Below are positions 21,423 to 58,712 of a DNA stretch of 64,000 nucleotides, piece after piece (position 1 is the stretch's first letter; each line of letters opens with the position of its first letter). Both the position numbers and the translations under genes were made by a program. The stretch lies in sequence record OR228459.1; one strand, given 5' to 3'. Under the pieces are notes generated by a model, which made no database searches, had not been told where the DNA came from, and saw nothing but the letters and a program-made list of their open reading frames with translations.

Positions 21423-22538
21423 TTAGATATGATCTGAGATCGGTTCAATTGGAGATTGATATGCAATCGTGATGATGATATTAATCTTACCAGTTGTACT
21501 GTTGTTTACGGATTCGTTAAAAATACAAGAAAGGATCTCATCTTTGTCACTAACCTGATGATTTACTTCATTTACAATGTAACGTTGTGTTGTCTGAATG
21601 TCGAAGTAATCATAAGGTGCAATTACAGTACCATCGATTTCCGATTGAACCGTGCCACCGAAGCGAACTAGCATATCAGTAACATCATTGTTGTATGGCT
21701 GTAATACATCAACTTGAATATTAGTGACAACATACCCAGCAGGACATGTACCTACTACAAGTAATGCGTTAGTGTAGCTTGTATCGATGGTATTAACGAT
21801 AACTTTAATATCTTTACCATCCTTACCCGGATCACCTTTGATGCTATCACCTTTTTCACCTTTCTCACCACGGAAGAGAATCCCTTCACTCCATTGCTTC
21901 TGGTTGGTTACTTCGTTTTCTTCTACGTAGTATAAGTATCCAGTTTTTGAATTATAGAATGTATAATCAACTGGTAGATTACTAATTTGTGGAAAATCTT
22001 CACCTTGTGAATCGATAATAAATCTACCACGTAAACCCTGTGGCCCACGGAAAGGGAATGGCCCACGCCAATCAGTGGTATCTAAATCATAAATGTAGAT
22101 ATTCCCATCTTCTGTATTATAGAAGGTGTATTCGTCAAATAGATTTGTTGTTGGTAATGTAGTACCTGAATCGTCAATTGTAAATGGACGCCCAGAATCA
22201 CCTTTTGGCCCACGACCGAACTCTTCTATGTTCCAAGTTGCAGGACGGATACCCGGTTCTGAGGTTTTAAAGTAGAGTATTGCTTTACCATTAGCTAAAC
22301 TCAAATAAGTCCAACCAATTGGTTTGTCAACTTCAAACGAACCATCAGGAATCTCAAATCCAATTAGATTTGGATAAAAGTTAGTACCGTTAGTACCATC
22401 ATGACCAACAACAAGACCTAAGTCATCGATAGTGTTATCAGCGTAAGTTACAATTAAGTGACCCGCACTGTTAATGTGGAACTTTGCTCCAGCACTATTA
22501 CATGAACTAATTGACCCATTATTGAATGAAATTGTCAT
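21423..22538 (-). CDS. Collagen-repeat-containing virion protein
   Basis: GPKGDSG, GPQGLRG and GEKGEKGD..KGDPGKDG triplets separate repeated small modules. Start moved to ATG 22538 after AAGGA. Confidence 0.75.
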   Translation of the reverse strand: MTISFNNGSISSCNSAGAKFHINSAGHLIVTYADNTIDDLGLVVGHDGTNGTNFYPNLIGFEIPDGSFEVDKPIGWTYLSLANGKAILYFKTSEPGIRPATWNIEEFGRGPKGDSGRPFTIDDSGTTLPTTNLFDEYTFYNTEDGNIYIYDLDTTDWRGPFPFRGPQGLRGRFIIDSQGEDFPQISNLPVDYTFYNSKTGYLYYVEENEVTNQKQWSEGILFRGEKGEKGDSIKGDPGKDGKDIKVIVNTIDTSYTNALLVVGTCPAGYVVTNIQVDVLQPYNNDVTDMLVRFGGTVQSEIDGTVIAPYDYFDIQTTQRYIVNEVNHQVSDKDEILSCIFNESVNNSTTGKINIIITIAYQSPIEPISDHI

Positions 22539-55919: not shown

Positions 55920-55968
55920 TATAAATATCTTAGTATGAAATCAATAAAATAGATTTACAAGGTATTTA
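55920..55968. promoter_or_regulatory. Face-to-face late promoters
   Basis: TATAAATA on plus (55920-55927) and TAAATA on minus (55963-55968). Confidence 0.55.
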
Positions 55969-56924
55969 TGATGAAAACTAAAACTCAAAACTTTATAGAA
56001 AAATCACAAAAGATACATGGGAGATTATATGACTATACCAAAGTTGTTTATGAAAATGCTAAAAGTAAAGTATTGATAGGATGCAAAAAACACGGATATT
56101 ATTATATAACACCCAATAAACATTTAAATGGGGCGGGTTGTCAGTCTTGTTCAAAAGAAAATAGAGTTAAATTGAAGACTAAATCTAAAAAAGATTTCGT
56201 AAATGATGCCAACATAAAACATGAACAAAAATATGATTACAGTTTAGTATCTGAAAATATTAAAAGAAGTGATCGTGTTGAGATAATTTGTGCCAAACAT
56301 GGAATATTTGAACAAACTGCACAAAATCATTTACAAGGTCAAGGTTGTCCACAATGTGGTTTAAAAACGAGAATTTCTAAACGAACTTTAAGTTCTGAAG
56401 AATTTATAAATCGTGCATCATCATTACATGACAATTTTTATGATTATTCAAAAACAATATATACTGGAATGTATAATGAAATAGAAGTTATATGTCCAAA
56501 TCATGGGAATTATCATATTCTTCCAGTAAAGCACTTACATCGTAAACAAGGTTGTCCAGAATGTTCGAAAGTAATGACTAAATCAAAAGCCGTAATTGAA
56601 ATTTGTAAGTTTTTTGATTCTAATGGGATACGCTACATTGAAGAATATAAAATCAACGAATGTAGAAATATTCACCCGTTGCCTTTTGATTTTTATCTAA
56701 TAGATTATGATATACTTATTGAATATGATGGAATACAACATTTTAAACCTATAGAATATTTTGGTGGACAACAAGGATTAGATGAACAGCAATATAATGA
56801 TAATATAAAAAATGAATATTGTAAAAGTACAGATAAGATTCTACTTAGAATAAGGTATGATGAAAACTATCTTGAAAAAATAAAAGAGTTTCTTGATTCT
56901 TGGGACAAACAGCAAAAAGTGTGA
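55968..56924 (+). mobile_element. Putative free-standing (homing-type) endonuclease: three CxxHG...GCxxC zinc-ribbon repeats plus DUF559/Vsr-like PD-(D/E)xK domain
   Basis: Three YDY...C..HG...H...GC..C repeats; LPFDFY...LIEYDG.QHF; very low GC and TTA-rich codons unlike neighbours. Confidence 0.8.
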
Positions 56925-56930
56925 TATAAT
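56900..56930 (+). promoter_or_regulatory. Early-type promoter, copy 5, overlapping the endonuclease stop codon
   Basis: TTGGGACAAACAGCAAAAAGTGTGATATAAT; no protein gene follows. Confidence 0.85.
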
Positions 56931-56936
56931 ATAGAT

Positions 56937-57388
56937 ACAACTCAGTGTGGATGTGAAAGCATACAAATCAAACCTGATTCACTCGAAAATGTAGAGGACA
57001 GATGAGCAGACCACACGTGCGAAGTGCAAATGAGACCCGTTAGGAGATGGCATAGTTAGTACCACCCACGGCAATGCGGCACTATAAACAAGCGTGTTAA
57101 GCAGATTGACGCTTGCTAGATAGACATATGAGGGACGACCTTACCACATTGCTAAGGGAGTTCAATTTAAGGCTGGCTTTAGATCCGTCTTGAATTTGAA
57201 CAACATTAAGATTCGATTGTATGGATTTTAATGTATGCGTACTAAGACTACGACCGTTGCACATGACCGTGATAGAGAGAAACAGAGCAACCCGCTTTCG
57301 TTCTGACTTGTTCAGAAATTCACGATACAATAATTCCGATGCTATCAGCGTCAAGCAATATTCAGATCCTTAATTGGGTCTTTTTTAT
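56937..57388 (+). ncRNA. Candidate large structured non-coding RNA (~450 nt), family not recognised
   Basis: Strong promoter, ~43% GC by hand count, at least ten stems including GNRA loops and long-range helices, ends in hairpin plus T6, no plausible long ORF. Confidence 0.65.
57364..57388 (+). terminator. Intrinsic terminator closing the ncRNA candidate
   Basis: AGATCC-TTAATT-GGGTCT-TTTTTATT. Confidence 0.65.
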
Positions 57389-57392
57389 TGTC

Positions 57393-57570
57393 TTCATTCC
57401 CCGATGGGGGGATGAAATTGCCTCAACAAATCTCGTCAAGATATAAAAGTACAAATAATAAAATTCAATCATTAAAATGAATTGAAATTATGAATAACGA
57501 ATGAAATGAGTTATTCATAATTGAAAATTCTTAGACAATCGAAGATTGGCTAATCAACATAAATGATTAG
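57393..57570. repeat. Array of inverted repeats in AT-rich DNA
   Basis: TTCATTCCCC/GGGGGATGAA; TTCAAT/ATTGAA; perfect 13-bp AATTATGAATAAC/GTTATTCATAATT; CAATC-GAA-GATTG; CTAATCA/TGATTAG. Confidence 0.85.
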
Positions 57571-57582
57571 AAATTTAGATAC

Positions 57583-57616
57583 AAAAAAAACCAGCAATAA
57601 ATGCTGGTTAGTTTTT
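57583..57616. terminator. Bidirectional terminator
   Basis: A-tract-AACCAGCA-ATAAA-TGCTGGTT followed by T-rich sequence. Confidence 0.75.
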
Positions 57617-57778
57617 ATTTTCTTTTGAAACTTTTTTGTTATATGCACGAACCAGAAGATCCCTTTCATTTGTTGGCATATTAAGTAGCATCTCATAGGA
57701 AGTGTTAGTGATATAGACAGATATTTCCATTAGAGCCGCTTTGATCTCTTTAACATTCAGTTCCATATCACTAAGCAC
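57608..57778 (-). CDS. Unannotated 56-aa ORF, T4 gp51-position; frame extends to 57826 and may be reached by -1 frameshift
   Basis: GTG-LSDMELNVKEIKAALMEISVYITNTSYEMLLNMPTNERDLLVRAYNKKVSKENKN; below the ORF track cutoff. Confidence 0.7.
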   Translation of the reverse strand: MLSDMELNVKEIKAALMEISVYITNTSYEMLLNMPTNERDLLVRAYNKKVSKENKN

Positions 57779-57783
57779 TTGTC

Positions 57784-58659
57784 TTATTTCTTCTGGTTTG
57801 GCAATGAGAAGCTGAATCCGAAAAAATTAGATGGATCATAACGTAGTTTGTCAATTTCCCATTGATGGTGACACTCAGAGCATTCAACATCCATTTTATG
57901 ACTAATACCAATTTCTTGTAACTCATCTGAAGTTTCACGTACTTCTTTAAGTGTATTTTTTGGTAAAGAACTTACCCATTCCGTGATAAATTCATCTTCA
58001 TTAACGATTTCACCATCAGGGGTTTCAATTTTATCAATACTTTTAACAATCATGTCAAAGTTCAATTGTGTCATTGCTTCAAACACTTCAGCAAACATTT
58101 TCTTCTTCTCTTCAAGAATTTCTTCTTCATCACCTTCCATAAAGTCAATCATTTCTGCTTTCTTTTGTTCTTGAAACATACGTTGACCGAAATCACTGTA
58201 TTCTTCCCAAGTATAAGGTTTAAAGTACACTTTAAGACCATTTGAAAGTTCAACTATTGGTTGTTTTTCAAAATATGTCATAGTGTCTAGAAGATTTTGT
58301 AGATTACGGTGGAACGCACCTTCATGACCGCATTCAGGGCAAGTAGTTTGAATTTCATAATCTTCTTCTTTGGAAGCTACTTTAATAGCGATCATTAATT
58401 GTTCTACGTCATTAACAAAAAGTTTACCTGCGTCATTAACACCGGGAACACAGTTCTCAATCACTTTAATTATTGCATCACCACCAATTAGTGCATCTGG
58501 TGTATTAAGCATAATTTCATCACGTGCAGAACGTGCACATACTCCTAACTTAATACTTTCTAGTACTTCTTTATCGTACTTAATTACATTGTTACTTGAA
58601 AGTTTAACAAAGATTTCTTCAATCTTAGTATATTTCGATAGTGGGTTCATTTTACTCAT
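57784..58659 (-). CDS. gp26: Baseplate hub assembly protein (T4 gp26-like)
   Basis: NPL.KY, RDEI.L.TPDAL..G......CVP, DV..L..AI..AS, CP.CG and C..C.H zinc motifs, D..NFF near the end. Confidence 0.75.
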   Translation of the reverse strand: MSKMNPLSKYTKIEEIFVKLSSNNVIKYDKEVLESIKLGVCARSARDEIMLNTPDALIGGDAIIKVIENCVPGVNDAGKLFVNDVEQLMIAIKVASKEEDYEIQTTCPECGHEGAFHRNLQNLLDTMTYFEKQPIVELSNGLKVYFKPYTWEEYSDFGQRMFQEQKKAEMIDFMEGDEEEILEEKKKMFAEVFEAMTQLNFDMIVKSIDKIETPDGEIVNEDEFITEWVSSLPKNTLKEVRETSDELQEIGISHKMDVECSECHHQWEIDKLRYDPSNFFGFSFSLPNQKK

Positions 58660-58702: not shown

Positions 58703-58712
58703 AGGAATGTAT

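Follow-up and report, generated by a model that had tools for sequence, protein, structure and literature searches.

A large structured RNA family of Rak2-like jumbo phages

To determine whether a G+C-rich, gene-free interval flagged in an initial annotation represents a genuine RNA, we analyzed positions 56937-57388 (+ strand) of a 64,000-nucleotide stretch of sequence record OR228459.1 (referred to here as the window). This stretch is a real non-coding RNA gene, one copy of a previously undescribed family of intricately folded RNAs of approximately 450 nt that Rak2-like jumbo phages carry as four or five diverged paralogues per genome and that small bacterial defence islands have also captured. 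The window matches Salmonella phage Munch, a Rak2-like jumbo phage, and the element is conserved in Asteriusvirus, Mimasvirus, Eneladusvirus and Alcyoneusvirus, as well as in Erwinia, Serratia and Xanthomonas relatives. We hold this identification with high confidence; that the RNA is probably a key control handle of these phages is inferred. The initial observation of a promoter-driven, highly structured stretch without a protein gene holds, while the interpretation attached to it is partly supported, as detailed below.

The element lies behind a phage-specific promoter at 56902-56930 (GGGACA-17 nt-TATAAT; 10 of 12 consensus matches), comprising the box TTGGGACAAA (56900-09), an upstream TG (56922-23) and a -10 TATAAT (56925-30), with an inferred start near 56937. 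The 11-mer TGTGATATAAT occurs exactly five times on the + strand of the window (6809, 9820, 28269, 51311 and 56920), each time preceded by TTGGGACAAA, and the other four copies lead into protein genes within 40 to 170 nt. The same promoter type stands upstream of nearly all paralogues and of the island copies. This promoter class is described for phages CBB and GAP32, and the CBB paper links the class, termed "divergent RpoD-like," mainly to DNA-synthesis genes (PMC5259590). The interval ends at a 6-bp hairpin (57364-57381) followed by T6. G+C content is 0.42 to 0.465 over 56900-57299 and 0.235 to 0.31 in the flanks, for which the initial estimate of 20 to 25% was slightly low.

Several GenBank records annotate short hypothetical ORFs at this location. 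However, only short, unconserved ORFs are present in the window copy, and across 27 family members the longest ATG-initiated ORF is 26 to 79 amino acids, on changing strands and at changing positions. Only the + strand folds more stably than its shuffles (minimum free energy z-score of -3.15, against -0.90 for the - strand), substitutions are compensatory and include G-U pairs, and a promoter and terminator flank the element. It is therefore very unlikely that the element is a decayed gene or a DNA-level repeat such as a recombination or packaging site, although one hairpin of the downstream leader (the second, described below) could be read equally well as a palindromic operator.

The element matches no known RNA family in the collections searched. 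A scan of the whole window against Rfam 15 at gathering thresholds returned no hits, a scan of the 1-kb region at E ≤ 10 returned only chance-level hits, none of them to a family of large structured RNAs, and scans of 11 paralogue loci returned nothing inside the element. ARAGORN found no tRNA or tmRNA gene in the window, and literature searches found no description of this RNA. A covariance model, R1, scores the window copy at 153 bits and yields exactly four hits in a 350-kb genome. A genome-wide pattern scan gave about 120 hits, of which only one (locus L156) was real; nine of 43 IMG/VR hits were likewise chance matches, and plasmids gave no match. We also considered ncRNA002 of phage PA5oct, a 451-nt RNA defined by RNA sequencing in a distant relative, but this RNA shares no motifs with the family and is not hit by model R1.

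Covariation supports about 17 helices, including four pseudoknot or kissing contacts; pseudoknotted pairs were scored with a dedicated script. The 5' domain of the core (56937-57160) contains helices a (56943-50/57011-17), h1 (56951-54/56959-62), s (56974-76/56999-57001), h2 (56979-84/56994-98, with the conserved loop GAAAAUGUA), b (57006-08/57018-20, which forms a pseudoknot with a), c (57023-27/57079-83), c2 (57037-40/57068-71), d (57089-94/57110-15) and f (57129-33/57139-43), together with the kissing contact e (57100-04/57149-53). In this domain, 34 of 47 pairs show changes on both sides; helix d is 94% paired, against 56% after shuffling, helix e is 86% paired, against 57%, and helices b and c are 100% paired. 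A variable peripheral hairpin follows (57160-57201), which is a short tetraloop hairpin in some copies and an arm of about 110 nt in others. The 3' domain (57203-57355) contains helices g (57203-15/57222-34), i (57238-41/57249-52), j (57256-60/57287-91, a pseudoknot into the loop of m), l (57268-72/57320-24), m (57275-79/57295-99), o (57302-05/57313-16) and k (57216-22/57325-31, a pseudoknot from the g loop), and then runs into the conserved AUCAGCGUCAA. Across 36 distinct sequences, 97.8% of cells in this domain pair, against 82.5% after shuffling (0 of 500 shuffles as high), 20 of 28 pairs are changed on both sides, and slid controls pair at 37 to 47%.

About half of the stems initially drawn by eye are right. 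Covariation confirms GTGTGG/CCACAC (helix a), ATGT-GAAA-GCAT (h1), the irregular hairpin at 57160-57201 (the variable-length arm), the 13-bp hairpin at 57203-57234 (g, with 11 covarying pairs), GTTGC/GCAAC (j) and TTCTGA/TCAGAA (o). In contrast, CTCA/TGAG is not supported, and AATCA/TGATT is displaced, as 56974-76 pairs with 56999-57001 instead. For CCGT/ATGG, RNAalifold instead pairs 57037-40 with 57068-71, although those pairs are nearly invariant and cannot be judged by covariation. In the case of ATAGT/ACTAT, 57079-83 pairs with 57023-27, and in the case of CCTTA/TAAGG, CCUUA pairs with UGAGG at 57129-33. The proposed long-range helix TTGACGCT+GATAG/CTATC-AGCGTCAA is likewise displaced, since 57110-15 belongs to helix d and GATAG/CTATC variants would give A-C mismatches.

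This fold does not carry the defining features of several known classes. For group I introns, there is no RF00028 hit at E ≤ 10, the order of helices (j, l, m, o) does not fit P3-P8-P7, and a promoter rather than an exon lies upstream. For group II introns, including class C introns, which insert after terminators, a 5' GUGUG occurs only in the window copy and in its close relatives, loci L048 and L050, while other copies have CUGAAUG, CUGCUUG and the like at that position; we saw no domain-V-like hairpin, and no group II family appeared in the Rfam scans. The hammerhead ribozyme requires an invariant CUGAUGA ... GAAA core, whereas the motif here is CAGAUGAG, of which only (A/U)UGAG is conserved.

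The 3' boundary at 57388 is only one possible end. The terminator hairpin t plus U6 (57364-57388) is modest in strength (-7.5 kcal/mol); 5 of its 6 pairs covary, but it is optional in the family, being absent in 8 of 27 copies. It lies about 30 nt from the last core helix, and we saw no alternative pairing between the core and t, which together with its absence from 8 copies argues against a riboswitch with a terminator expression platform. Conservation continues about 200 nt past t, to about position 57555. Hairpin u (UUCAUUCCCC/GGGGGAUGAA, 57393-57416; -16.5 kcal/mol) and a tail box ending CAAAUCUCGUCA (57427-57438) are present in every copy, whether or not t is there, and G471-G474 and CGTCA are invariant. 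We found no covariation to support pairing of the tail box with the 5' end or with core motifs. A conserved leader module follows (57476-57555), consisting of a stem GAAUU/AAUUC enclosing a 13-bp hairpin with a loop of the type GAACG(N)AGUGA (z = -6.2) and then a second hairpin, UUAGACAAUC-GAAG-GAUUGGCUAA. This module is present with compensatory changes in paralogues, in XaC1, in K64-1 and in the island copies, and conservation extends through u, the tail box and the leader in every copy, including copies with no adjacent gene. The window element is the promoter-proximal part of a conserved non-coding unit of about 620 nt (core, optional terminator t, G-rich hairpin u, tail box and leader hairpins). 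A bidirectional intrinsic terminator (57589-57609) separates this unit from the convergent baseplate-hub gene block (57608-58659, - strand).

The window copy belongs to class A, the copy that sits syntenically between endonuclease VII and the baseplate hub gene. In the non-A copies examined, a same-strand gene starts about 40 to 160 nt after the unit; these genes are phrog_16210 in three paralogue classes, an ADP-ribosylglycohydrolase, a DNA methylase and an HNH endonuclease, and XaC1 and K64-1 show the same arrangement. Terminator t lies between the core and those genes in 19 of 27 copies. Each of the 11 copies examined upstream has a phage-type -10 immediately upstream, with a hairpin plus U-run between that -10 and the core in classes B, C and X. 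No protein is a constant partner, as phrog_16210 follows only three of the paralogue classes and the island proteins have no phage counterpart in PHROGs or Pfam.

The whole unit, with its phage-type promoter, also sits in integrase-bearing defence islands in Enterobacteriaceae chromosomes, aimed at the island's CI repressor gene. These islands have an integrase, defence cargo of four unrelated types, no transfer genes, no recognizable replication genes and one integration site next to a small-RNA gene (ffs). The island copies keep the promoter, all core motifs and new compensatory pairs and have diverged to 78% identity among themselves, and so the RNA is under selection there too. One layout, in which the unit is followed by a short opposite-strand gene and then a co-directional operon, is seen both in the window and in the CI-type islands.

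The structure, its copy number and breadth, the absence of a known match, the upstream and downstream arrangement and the island copies are established by this analysis, whereas the function of the RNA, including any read-through, polymerase binding, catalysis, oligomerization, R-loop formation or island mobilization, is inferred from sequence. Our preferred but tentative explanation is that the unit acts in cis, as it is transcribed, at the head of a transcription unit. In this view, some polymerases would stop at t and release a discrete RNA of about 450 nt, while the folded core, made before the polymerase reaches t, would allow or regulate read-through of t and of later terminators into the genes beyond, as a processive-antitermination or attenuation-type leader. 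In the window, read-through would cross the short opposite-strand baseplate block and enter the + strand virion genes from 58707; in the islands, the unit points through the CI gene into the co-directional Cro-like operon, which would make island expression respond to the transcription program of the jumbo phage. The weak terminator, the same-strand genes beyond it, the conserved extension and the recurring layout are consistent with this model. However, known antiterminator RNAs (put, EAR) are 70 to 120 nt rather than 450 nt with four pseudoknots, a degree of complexity more typical of ribozymes or RNP scaffolds. In addition, the core could not help the polymerase pass the terminator-like hairpin that precedes it in classes B, C and X, class A has no adjacent same-strand gene in several genera yet is fully conserved, and some copies have sigma70-like hexamers inside the leader (by our reading, TTGACA-18 nt-TAGTAT in copy L016) that could drive the downstream genes on their own.

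A rival explanation is a trans-acting RNA, a possibility we rate only slightly below the cis model and which remains doubtful. The approximately 450-nt species, released at t or processed from longer transcripts, could itself be the product, as a ribozyme, the RNA subunit or scaffold of a phage RNP or a self-assembling "ornate" RNA; several copies would raise dosage, and the islands would make their own version to hijack or poison the phage partner. The size and complexity of the RNA, its long invariant single-stranded motifs, the discrete promoter-to-terminator gene of class A (conserved across genera with no adjacent downstream gene) and the retention of the invariant motifs in the islands favor this view, and the covarying loop-loop contacts e and k could be intermolecular, as in the ornate RNA homo-oligomers (PMC12286853). 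On the other hand, the 8 copies without a terminator must be co-transcribed with the downstream genes, the conserved extension past t would be unexplained, most copies head an operon, and no protein partner is consistently adjacent. A ring built from different paralogues through the kissing loops, as in phi29 pRNA, was rejected, because in the copies we read in the alignments each copy's loops are complementary to each other.

It is less likely that the transcript marks its own DNA as a replication origin, through an R-loop or primer as at T4 oriF/oriG or with ColE1 RNA II, such that the four or five copies would be the origins of a 350-kb genome and the islands would carry the unit in order to be amplified by the replisome of the helper phage. 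Copies are dispersed 55 to 112 kb apart and all point the same way within a genome, the promoter class is associated with DNA-synthesis genes (PMC5259590), a conserved G6 run in hairpin u is followed by an AT-rich hairpin region, and the unit has been captured by islands that have no recognizable replication genes. T4 origin plasmids are reportedly replicated, packaged and transduced (Kreuzer and Alberts), and jumbo-phage satellites whose replication and packaging mechanisms are unknown do exist (PMC12595487, PMC12772148). However, cumulative GC skew in a full genome follows gene orientation and shows no feature at three of the four copies, the GC skew of the RNA itself is weak, a terminator before the AT-rich region would release the primer, T4 origins need no structured RNA, and operon heads explain the dispersal and common orientation just as well.

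An anti-defence or host-takeover decoy, in which an abundant RNA would bind and block a host factor such as a nuclease, a sensor, Hfq or RNase E, is improbable. The strong promoters, several copies and neighboring anti-restriction-type methylases and ADP-ribosylglycohydrolase are compatible with this reading, but the same unit is a core part of islands whose cargo is defence systems of four unrelated types, no repeated protein-binding motif of the CsrB or 6S kind was noticed, and the structure is far more elaborate than known sponges. Of the initial annotation's proposals, that of a promoter-driven, highly structured RNA outside Rfam, tRNA and tmRNA is supported, and the conservation and compensatory changes it had named in advance as a test were found in relatives. 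That the RNA is abundant and early is not established, and the picture of a free-standing 450-nt RNA is incomplete. Among its suggested roles, replication primer stays a live rival and sponge or scaffold cannot be excluded, while a guide role has no support, as we saw no variable, guide-like segment and the covarying loop sequences that we checked pair within the molecule.

A more speculative and unlikely, though not excluded, reading is that the unit is an RNA-based recognition handle, a new class of large catalytic or polymerase/replisome-binding RNA that marks its own locus for the phage's transcription or replication machinery and that integrase-bearing defence islands captured in order to sense their helper jumbo phage or to be amplified or mobilized by it. 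If so, it would be the first RNA module found to be shared between a virulent jumbo phage and its satellites.

Large, intricately folded bacterial and phage RNAs are rare, and each one found so far has opened a field (RNase P, group I and II introns, tmRNA, OLE, GOLLD/ROOL and the HEARO omega-RNAs). This one is notable in being conserved across a whole clade of 350-kb phages, in its four or five diverged copies per genome, in its placement behind a phage-specific promoter and in matching no known family. The capture of the present RNA, with its aim at the island's repressor gene, offers a concrete and testable answer to questions raised in 2025 about how jumbo-phage satellites sense their helper, replicate and are selected for packaging (PMC12772148). 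Should the RNA control read-through, it would also bear on the long-standing question of how T4-like phages extend early transcription.

Among known systems, the islands resemble jumbo-phage satellites, i.e., integrase-plus-defence islands such as I55/JPTI55 (PMC12595487), in their integrase, variable cargo, lack of transfer genes and single integration site; those satellites belong to a different host and helper lineage (Pseudomonas), and a text search of that paper found no mention of a non-coding element shared with the helper. Bacterial RNase P RNA is similar in size, and the motif ACAGAGCAACCCGCUUUCG is reminiscent of its CR-V region, but there was no Rfam hit even at E ≤ 10, the motif lies in a local hairpin (helix m) knotted to j rather than in a long-range P4 helix, and no CR-I-like element was recognized by inspection. 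T4 oriF/oriG and ColE1 RNA II share a promoter-driven non-coding transcript next to replication and recombination genes, several per genome, and RNA II is about 550 nt and depends on its structure; T4 origin transcripts are not conserved structured RNAs, and there is no evidence here for an R-loop and no signal in the skew. GOLLD, ROOL and OLE (PMC12286853) are likewise very large, intricately folded and of unknown function, GOLLD and ROOL are phage-borne, and covarying loop-loop contacts could mediate assembly. Their covariance models do not match, and the present family differs in its host range (Gram-negative jumbo phages), its four or five diverged paralogues per genome and its fixed position behind a specific promoter and ahead of genes. 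The nearest analogies for the proposed cis action are the put RNA of phage HK022 and the promoter-nut-terminator layout of lambda, processive antitermination elements at the start of early operons. The put RNA is about 70 nt with two stems, whereas this core is about 420 nt with pseudoknots and has no sequence or fold similarity to it, and the likeness of the tail box to boxA is weak, as its invariant positions do not match the boxA core. In common with these elements, the unit is promoter-proximal in its transcript and is followed by a terminator and then genes, with a proposed action in cis on the transcribing polymerase, and its tail box and conserved-loop hairpins loosely recall boxA and boxB.

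The window matches Salmonella phage Munch, a Rak2-like jumbo phage, and positions 56930-57395 are identical to MK268344 182014-182479. At 56902-56930 we identified a sigma70-type promoter (GGGACA, 17 nt, TATAAT) with an upstream TG. The 11-mer TGTGATATAAT occurs exactly five times on the + strand of the window (6809, 9820, 28269, 51311, and 56920), and each copy is preceded by the box TTGGGACAAA; the five promoters share about 30 nt (TTGGGACAAA, N10, TGTGATATAAT). The box in place of a -35 element suggests dependence on a phage activator, as at a middle promoter. These sequences correspond to the "divergent RpoD-like" promoter class, with TGAAACG in place of TTGACA, which was described for the relatives CBB and GAP32 and was found mostly upstream of DNA-synthesis genes (PMC5259590). 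Four of the copies lead into protein genes within 40-170 nt; downstream of the fifth there is no credible gene.

To assess whether this region encodes a structured RNA, we examined its composition and folding. G+C content rises to 0.42-0.465, against 0.235-0.31 in the flanks, and the + strand folds better than its shuffles (z = -3.15), while the - strand does not (z = -0.90). A 6-bp hairpin with T6 lies at 57364-57387 (-7.5 kcal/mol; terminator t). The observation made in the initial annotation, that a strong promoter fires into a structured region without a protein gene, is therefore confirmed. Immediately upstream, at 55968-56924 (+), lies a 318-aa gene with DUF723 and treble-clef zinc-finger repeats and what looks by eye like a Vsr/PD-(D/E)XK-type C terminus (no Pfam hit for that part), which makes it a homing-endonuclease-like gene. 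It is inserted between endonuclease VII and the RNA promoter in Munch and fENko-Kae01 and is absent at that site in EJP2, PBECO4, GAP32, and the others; its stop codon overlaps the extended -10 of the RNA promoter.

The element belongs to a multicopy family. BLASTN against 50,697 phage records found 62 records with 264 places, or 4-5 places per genome, and the matches are all jumbo phages of about 320-385 kb from Escherichia, Salmonella, Klebsiella, Cronobacter, Pectobacterium, Erwinia, Serratia, Yersinia, and Xanthomonas. In one unannotated genome (OR844650, of which 350 kb of 352 kb was examined), there are four full-length copies, at about 18, 129, 208, and 262 kb, all on the same strand, and a covariance model of the 3' domain finds exactly those four and nothing else. 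Munch has a second copy at 40.5-41.0 kb, in an unannotated gap. The window copy ("class A") is syntenic, lying after endonuclease VII (gp49) and before the baseplate hub in EJP2, PBECO4, GAP32, CBB, and fHe-Yen9-03; in Xanthomonas phage XaC1 it also follows endonuclease VII, but there + strand genes come after it rather than the baseplate hub. A divergent copy exists in Klebsiella phage K64-1 of Alcyoneusvirus, where the order is terminator, then promoter, then RNA. A pattern scan of IMG/VR added 34 true copies, and a metagenome scan added 68 more loci. Paralogues within one genome are only about 60-70% identical, so the duplications are old. The dispersal of the copies and their promoter class would favor a role as an origin or primer RNA in the manner of T4 oriF/G or ColE1 RNA II, but cumulative GC skew gives no origin signal and a terminator lies upstream of the AT-rich part; although capture by chromosomal islands that lack replication genes (see below) also favors it, we consider this explanation unlikely.

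Alignment of the copies shows strictly conserved blocks separated by variable hairpins. A blind scan for stacked, covarying column pairs recovered a set of helices that do not contradict one another apart from the pseudoknots, and RNAalifold on 27 copies predicted 67 pairs, 40 of them with compensatory changes. We next scored each helix with shuffle and slide controls, expressing pairing as the share of cells that pair, observed against the shuffled mean. In the 5' part, helix a (56943-50/57011-17) has 6-7 covarying pairs; helix b (57006-08/57018-20) is 100% paired and forms with a a compact H-type pseudoknot; helix c (57023-27/57079-83) is 100% paired; helix d (57089-94/57110-15) is paired in 94% against 56%; and helix e (57100-04/57149-53), a loop-to-strand (kissing) contact, in 86% against 57%. 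In the 3' part, helix g (57203-15/57222-34) has 11 covarying pairs, and its loop pairs with a strand ~100 nt downstream to form helix k (57216-22/57325-31; 99.5% against 78%). Helix j (57256-60/57287-91; 100% paired) is knotted into the loop of hairpin m (57275-79/57295-99; 100% paired), helix l (57268-72/57320-24) is 100% paired, and helix o (57302-05/57313-16) is 94% paired. On a model-based alignment of 38 copies (36 distinct), 97.8% of cells in the nested part of the 3' domain are paired, against 82.5% after shuffling (0 of 500 shuffles as high), 20 of 28 pairs changed on both sides, and 37-47% are paired when the partners are slid by 1-3 columns. About half of the stems drawn by hand in the initial annotation are right; its long-range helix and four local stems are replaced by covarying alternatives. 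No open reading frame is conserved, and the possibility that the element is not an RNA at all is remote.

Two further features are typical of large functional RNAs. One peripheral arm (57160-57201) ranges from a tetraloop hairpin to about 110 nt. One module (57040-57066; about columns 123-183 of our alignment A1) exists in two unrelated forms, a hairpin with an 11-nt loop, CAUAGUUAGUA, or a longer irregular hairpin, and the forms differ between otherwise near-identical copies (copy L017 against L037 and copy L025 against L026), which implies modular exchange by recombination. In addition, a module of about 30 nt, of the form UUUU-(A/G)GUACAA-N-GAUCCGUC-CAAAAUU, recurs at two different positions in the fold, at window 57170-57195 and as insertions in hairpin o of copies L016, L023, L043, L052, L058, ECO103_D, and XaC1; it behaves like a transposable tertiary-contact module.

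Conservation does not stop at the T6. Every copy continues with a stable hairpin (u) with an invariant G run (57393-57416), a box ending CAAAUCUCGUCA (to 57438), and a leader module (57476-57555) made of hairpins with loops of the type GAACG(N)AGUGA. The leader has a GAAUU/AAUUC stem, a 13-bp hairpin with the GAACG(N)AGUGA-type loop, and a second hairpin that contains TAGACA (TTGACA in other copies); it is conserved with compensatory changes even where no gene follows and could be a protein-binding site, a processing site, or an operator. Terminator t itself is missing in 8 of 27 copies (classes B, C, and X, and XaC1). In the non-A copies examined, a gene starts on the same strand about 40-160 nt after the unit. 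These genes are phrog_16210, in three paralogue classes and followed in some genomes by a DNA methylase; an ADP-ribosylglycohydrolase; an N6/N4 DNA methylase; and an HNH endonuclease. Class A instead faces a bidirectional terminator (57589-57609) and a 1-kb block of - strand genes, after which the + strand virion genes resume at 58707. The interpretation of the region as a free-standing ~450-nt structured RNA of unrecognized class is partly supported: the structured RNA is real, but the unit is longer and usually heads an operon. The class A gene layout and the complexity of the fold favor a trans-acting ribozyme, RNP, or ornate RNA, while the copies without a terminator and the conserved extension count against this explanation, which we regard as doubtful, though only slightly less probable than the cis-acting model outlined below.

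The same unit was unexpectedly found in small integrase-bearing defense islands in Enterobacteriaceae chromosomes. Only one hit of a bacterial-genome scan was real, a 212-kb Enterobacteriaceae MAG contig of 51% G+C in which the complete unit lies in an AT-rich island between thiM/thiD and a CI/LexA-type repressor gene. The unit is intact, with a phage-type promoter of the form CATGAAACA...TATACT, all core motifs, t, u, the tail box, and the leader hairpins. Looking up that repressor returned 14 contigs that share one backbone: the RNA unit, convergent on the CI gene; then, codirectional with the unit, a Cro-like HTH_35 gene, a 233-aa protein, and LprI; an invertase; a variable defense cargo (TIR plus nSTAND NTPase, nSTAND3, or the Hachiman pair HamA plus helicase); and a tyrosine integrase. 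Metagenome contigs show the same backbone at other chromosomal sites and carry a 398-399-aa putative integrase, assigned without a Pfam search, or what looks from its N terminus like a large serine recombinase.

A second island type sits next to ffs in E. coli LR-29-1. It carries a unit with a TTTTTGGGATGAA...TGTGATATAAT promoter, followed by three same-strand genes; its cargo is a DuOB/DUF488/DUF4326 set, it has a recombinase, and its integrase is cut by an IS3 element. Over both types (our loci L156:6380-7170; L182-L187, about 10.65-11.9 kb, - strand; L188:10900-11700; and L195, L214, L217, L251, and L252), the known insertion sites are thiM, guaC/ppdD, and ffs; in the CI-type islands the unit is convergent on a CI/S24 repressor gene and codirectional with the Cro-like operon beyond it. 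Only 2 of 5,426 complete E. coli genomes, and no plasmid, have the unit. Island copies score 103-139 bits with the covariance model and carry their own compensatory variants; by our reading of the sequence, helix b is GUU/AAC there. The CI-type island copies placed in the tree form a clade that has itself diverged to 78% identity and is sister to the XaC1 copy. So the RNA fold, and not just a stretch of shared DNA, has been maintained in the islands.

Together, our analyses establish a conserved, pseudoknotted RNA fold, a fixed position behind a phage-type promoter, an optional, weak terminator, a conserved extension past that terminator, codirectional genes beyond the unit, and capture of the complete unit by the islands, whereas its function is inferred and unproven. 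We tentatively propose that the unit works in cis at the head of a transcription unit. In this view, some polymerases would stop at t, giving the discrete ~450-nt RNA predicted in the initial annotation, while the folded core, made before t is reached, would permit or regulate read-through of t and of later terminators. In the islands, this would drive transcription antisense through CI and into the Cro-like operon, which would tie island activation to the phage's transcription programme. Several features argue against this model. In paralogue classes B, C, and X (e.g., L002:40500-40560, L008 [ECO103 copy C], and L015:1440-1500), the order is -10 element, then a terminator-like hairpin with a U-run, and then the RNA core, such that transcripts would have to pass a hairpin and U-run only about 10-40 nt from their start. 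Some leaders also contain possible promoters of their own, and known antiterminator RNAs are six times smaller. A decoy or sponge appears very unlikely.

We conclude that this is a new RNA class, with a new link between phages and chromosomal islands. Rfam 15 gives nothing at gathering thresholds for the window, nothing meaningful at E<=10 for the region, and nothing inside the element in 11 paralogue loci; ARAGORN finds no tRNA or tmRNA; and literature searches found no description of this RNA. The resemblances we considered, to RNase P CR-V, group I introns, group II introns including class C, hammerhead ribozymes, and a riboswitch plus terminator, each fail a defining feature. Islands of the same general kind (integrase plus defense genes, no transfer genes, inserted beside small-RNA genes) were recently shown in Pseudomonas to be satellites transduced by a jumbo phage, although how they sense, replicate, and get packaged is unknown (PMC12595487, PMC12772148). 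The RNA-seq-defined ncRNA002 of the distantly related jumbo phage PA5oct (L059, PA5oct 21951-22401; PMC7318152) is, at 451 nt, the same length as the RNA described here but is unrelated, sharing no motif and getting no model hit; large noncoding RNAs may have arisen more than once in this phage group.
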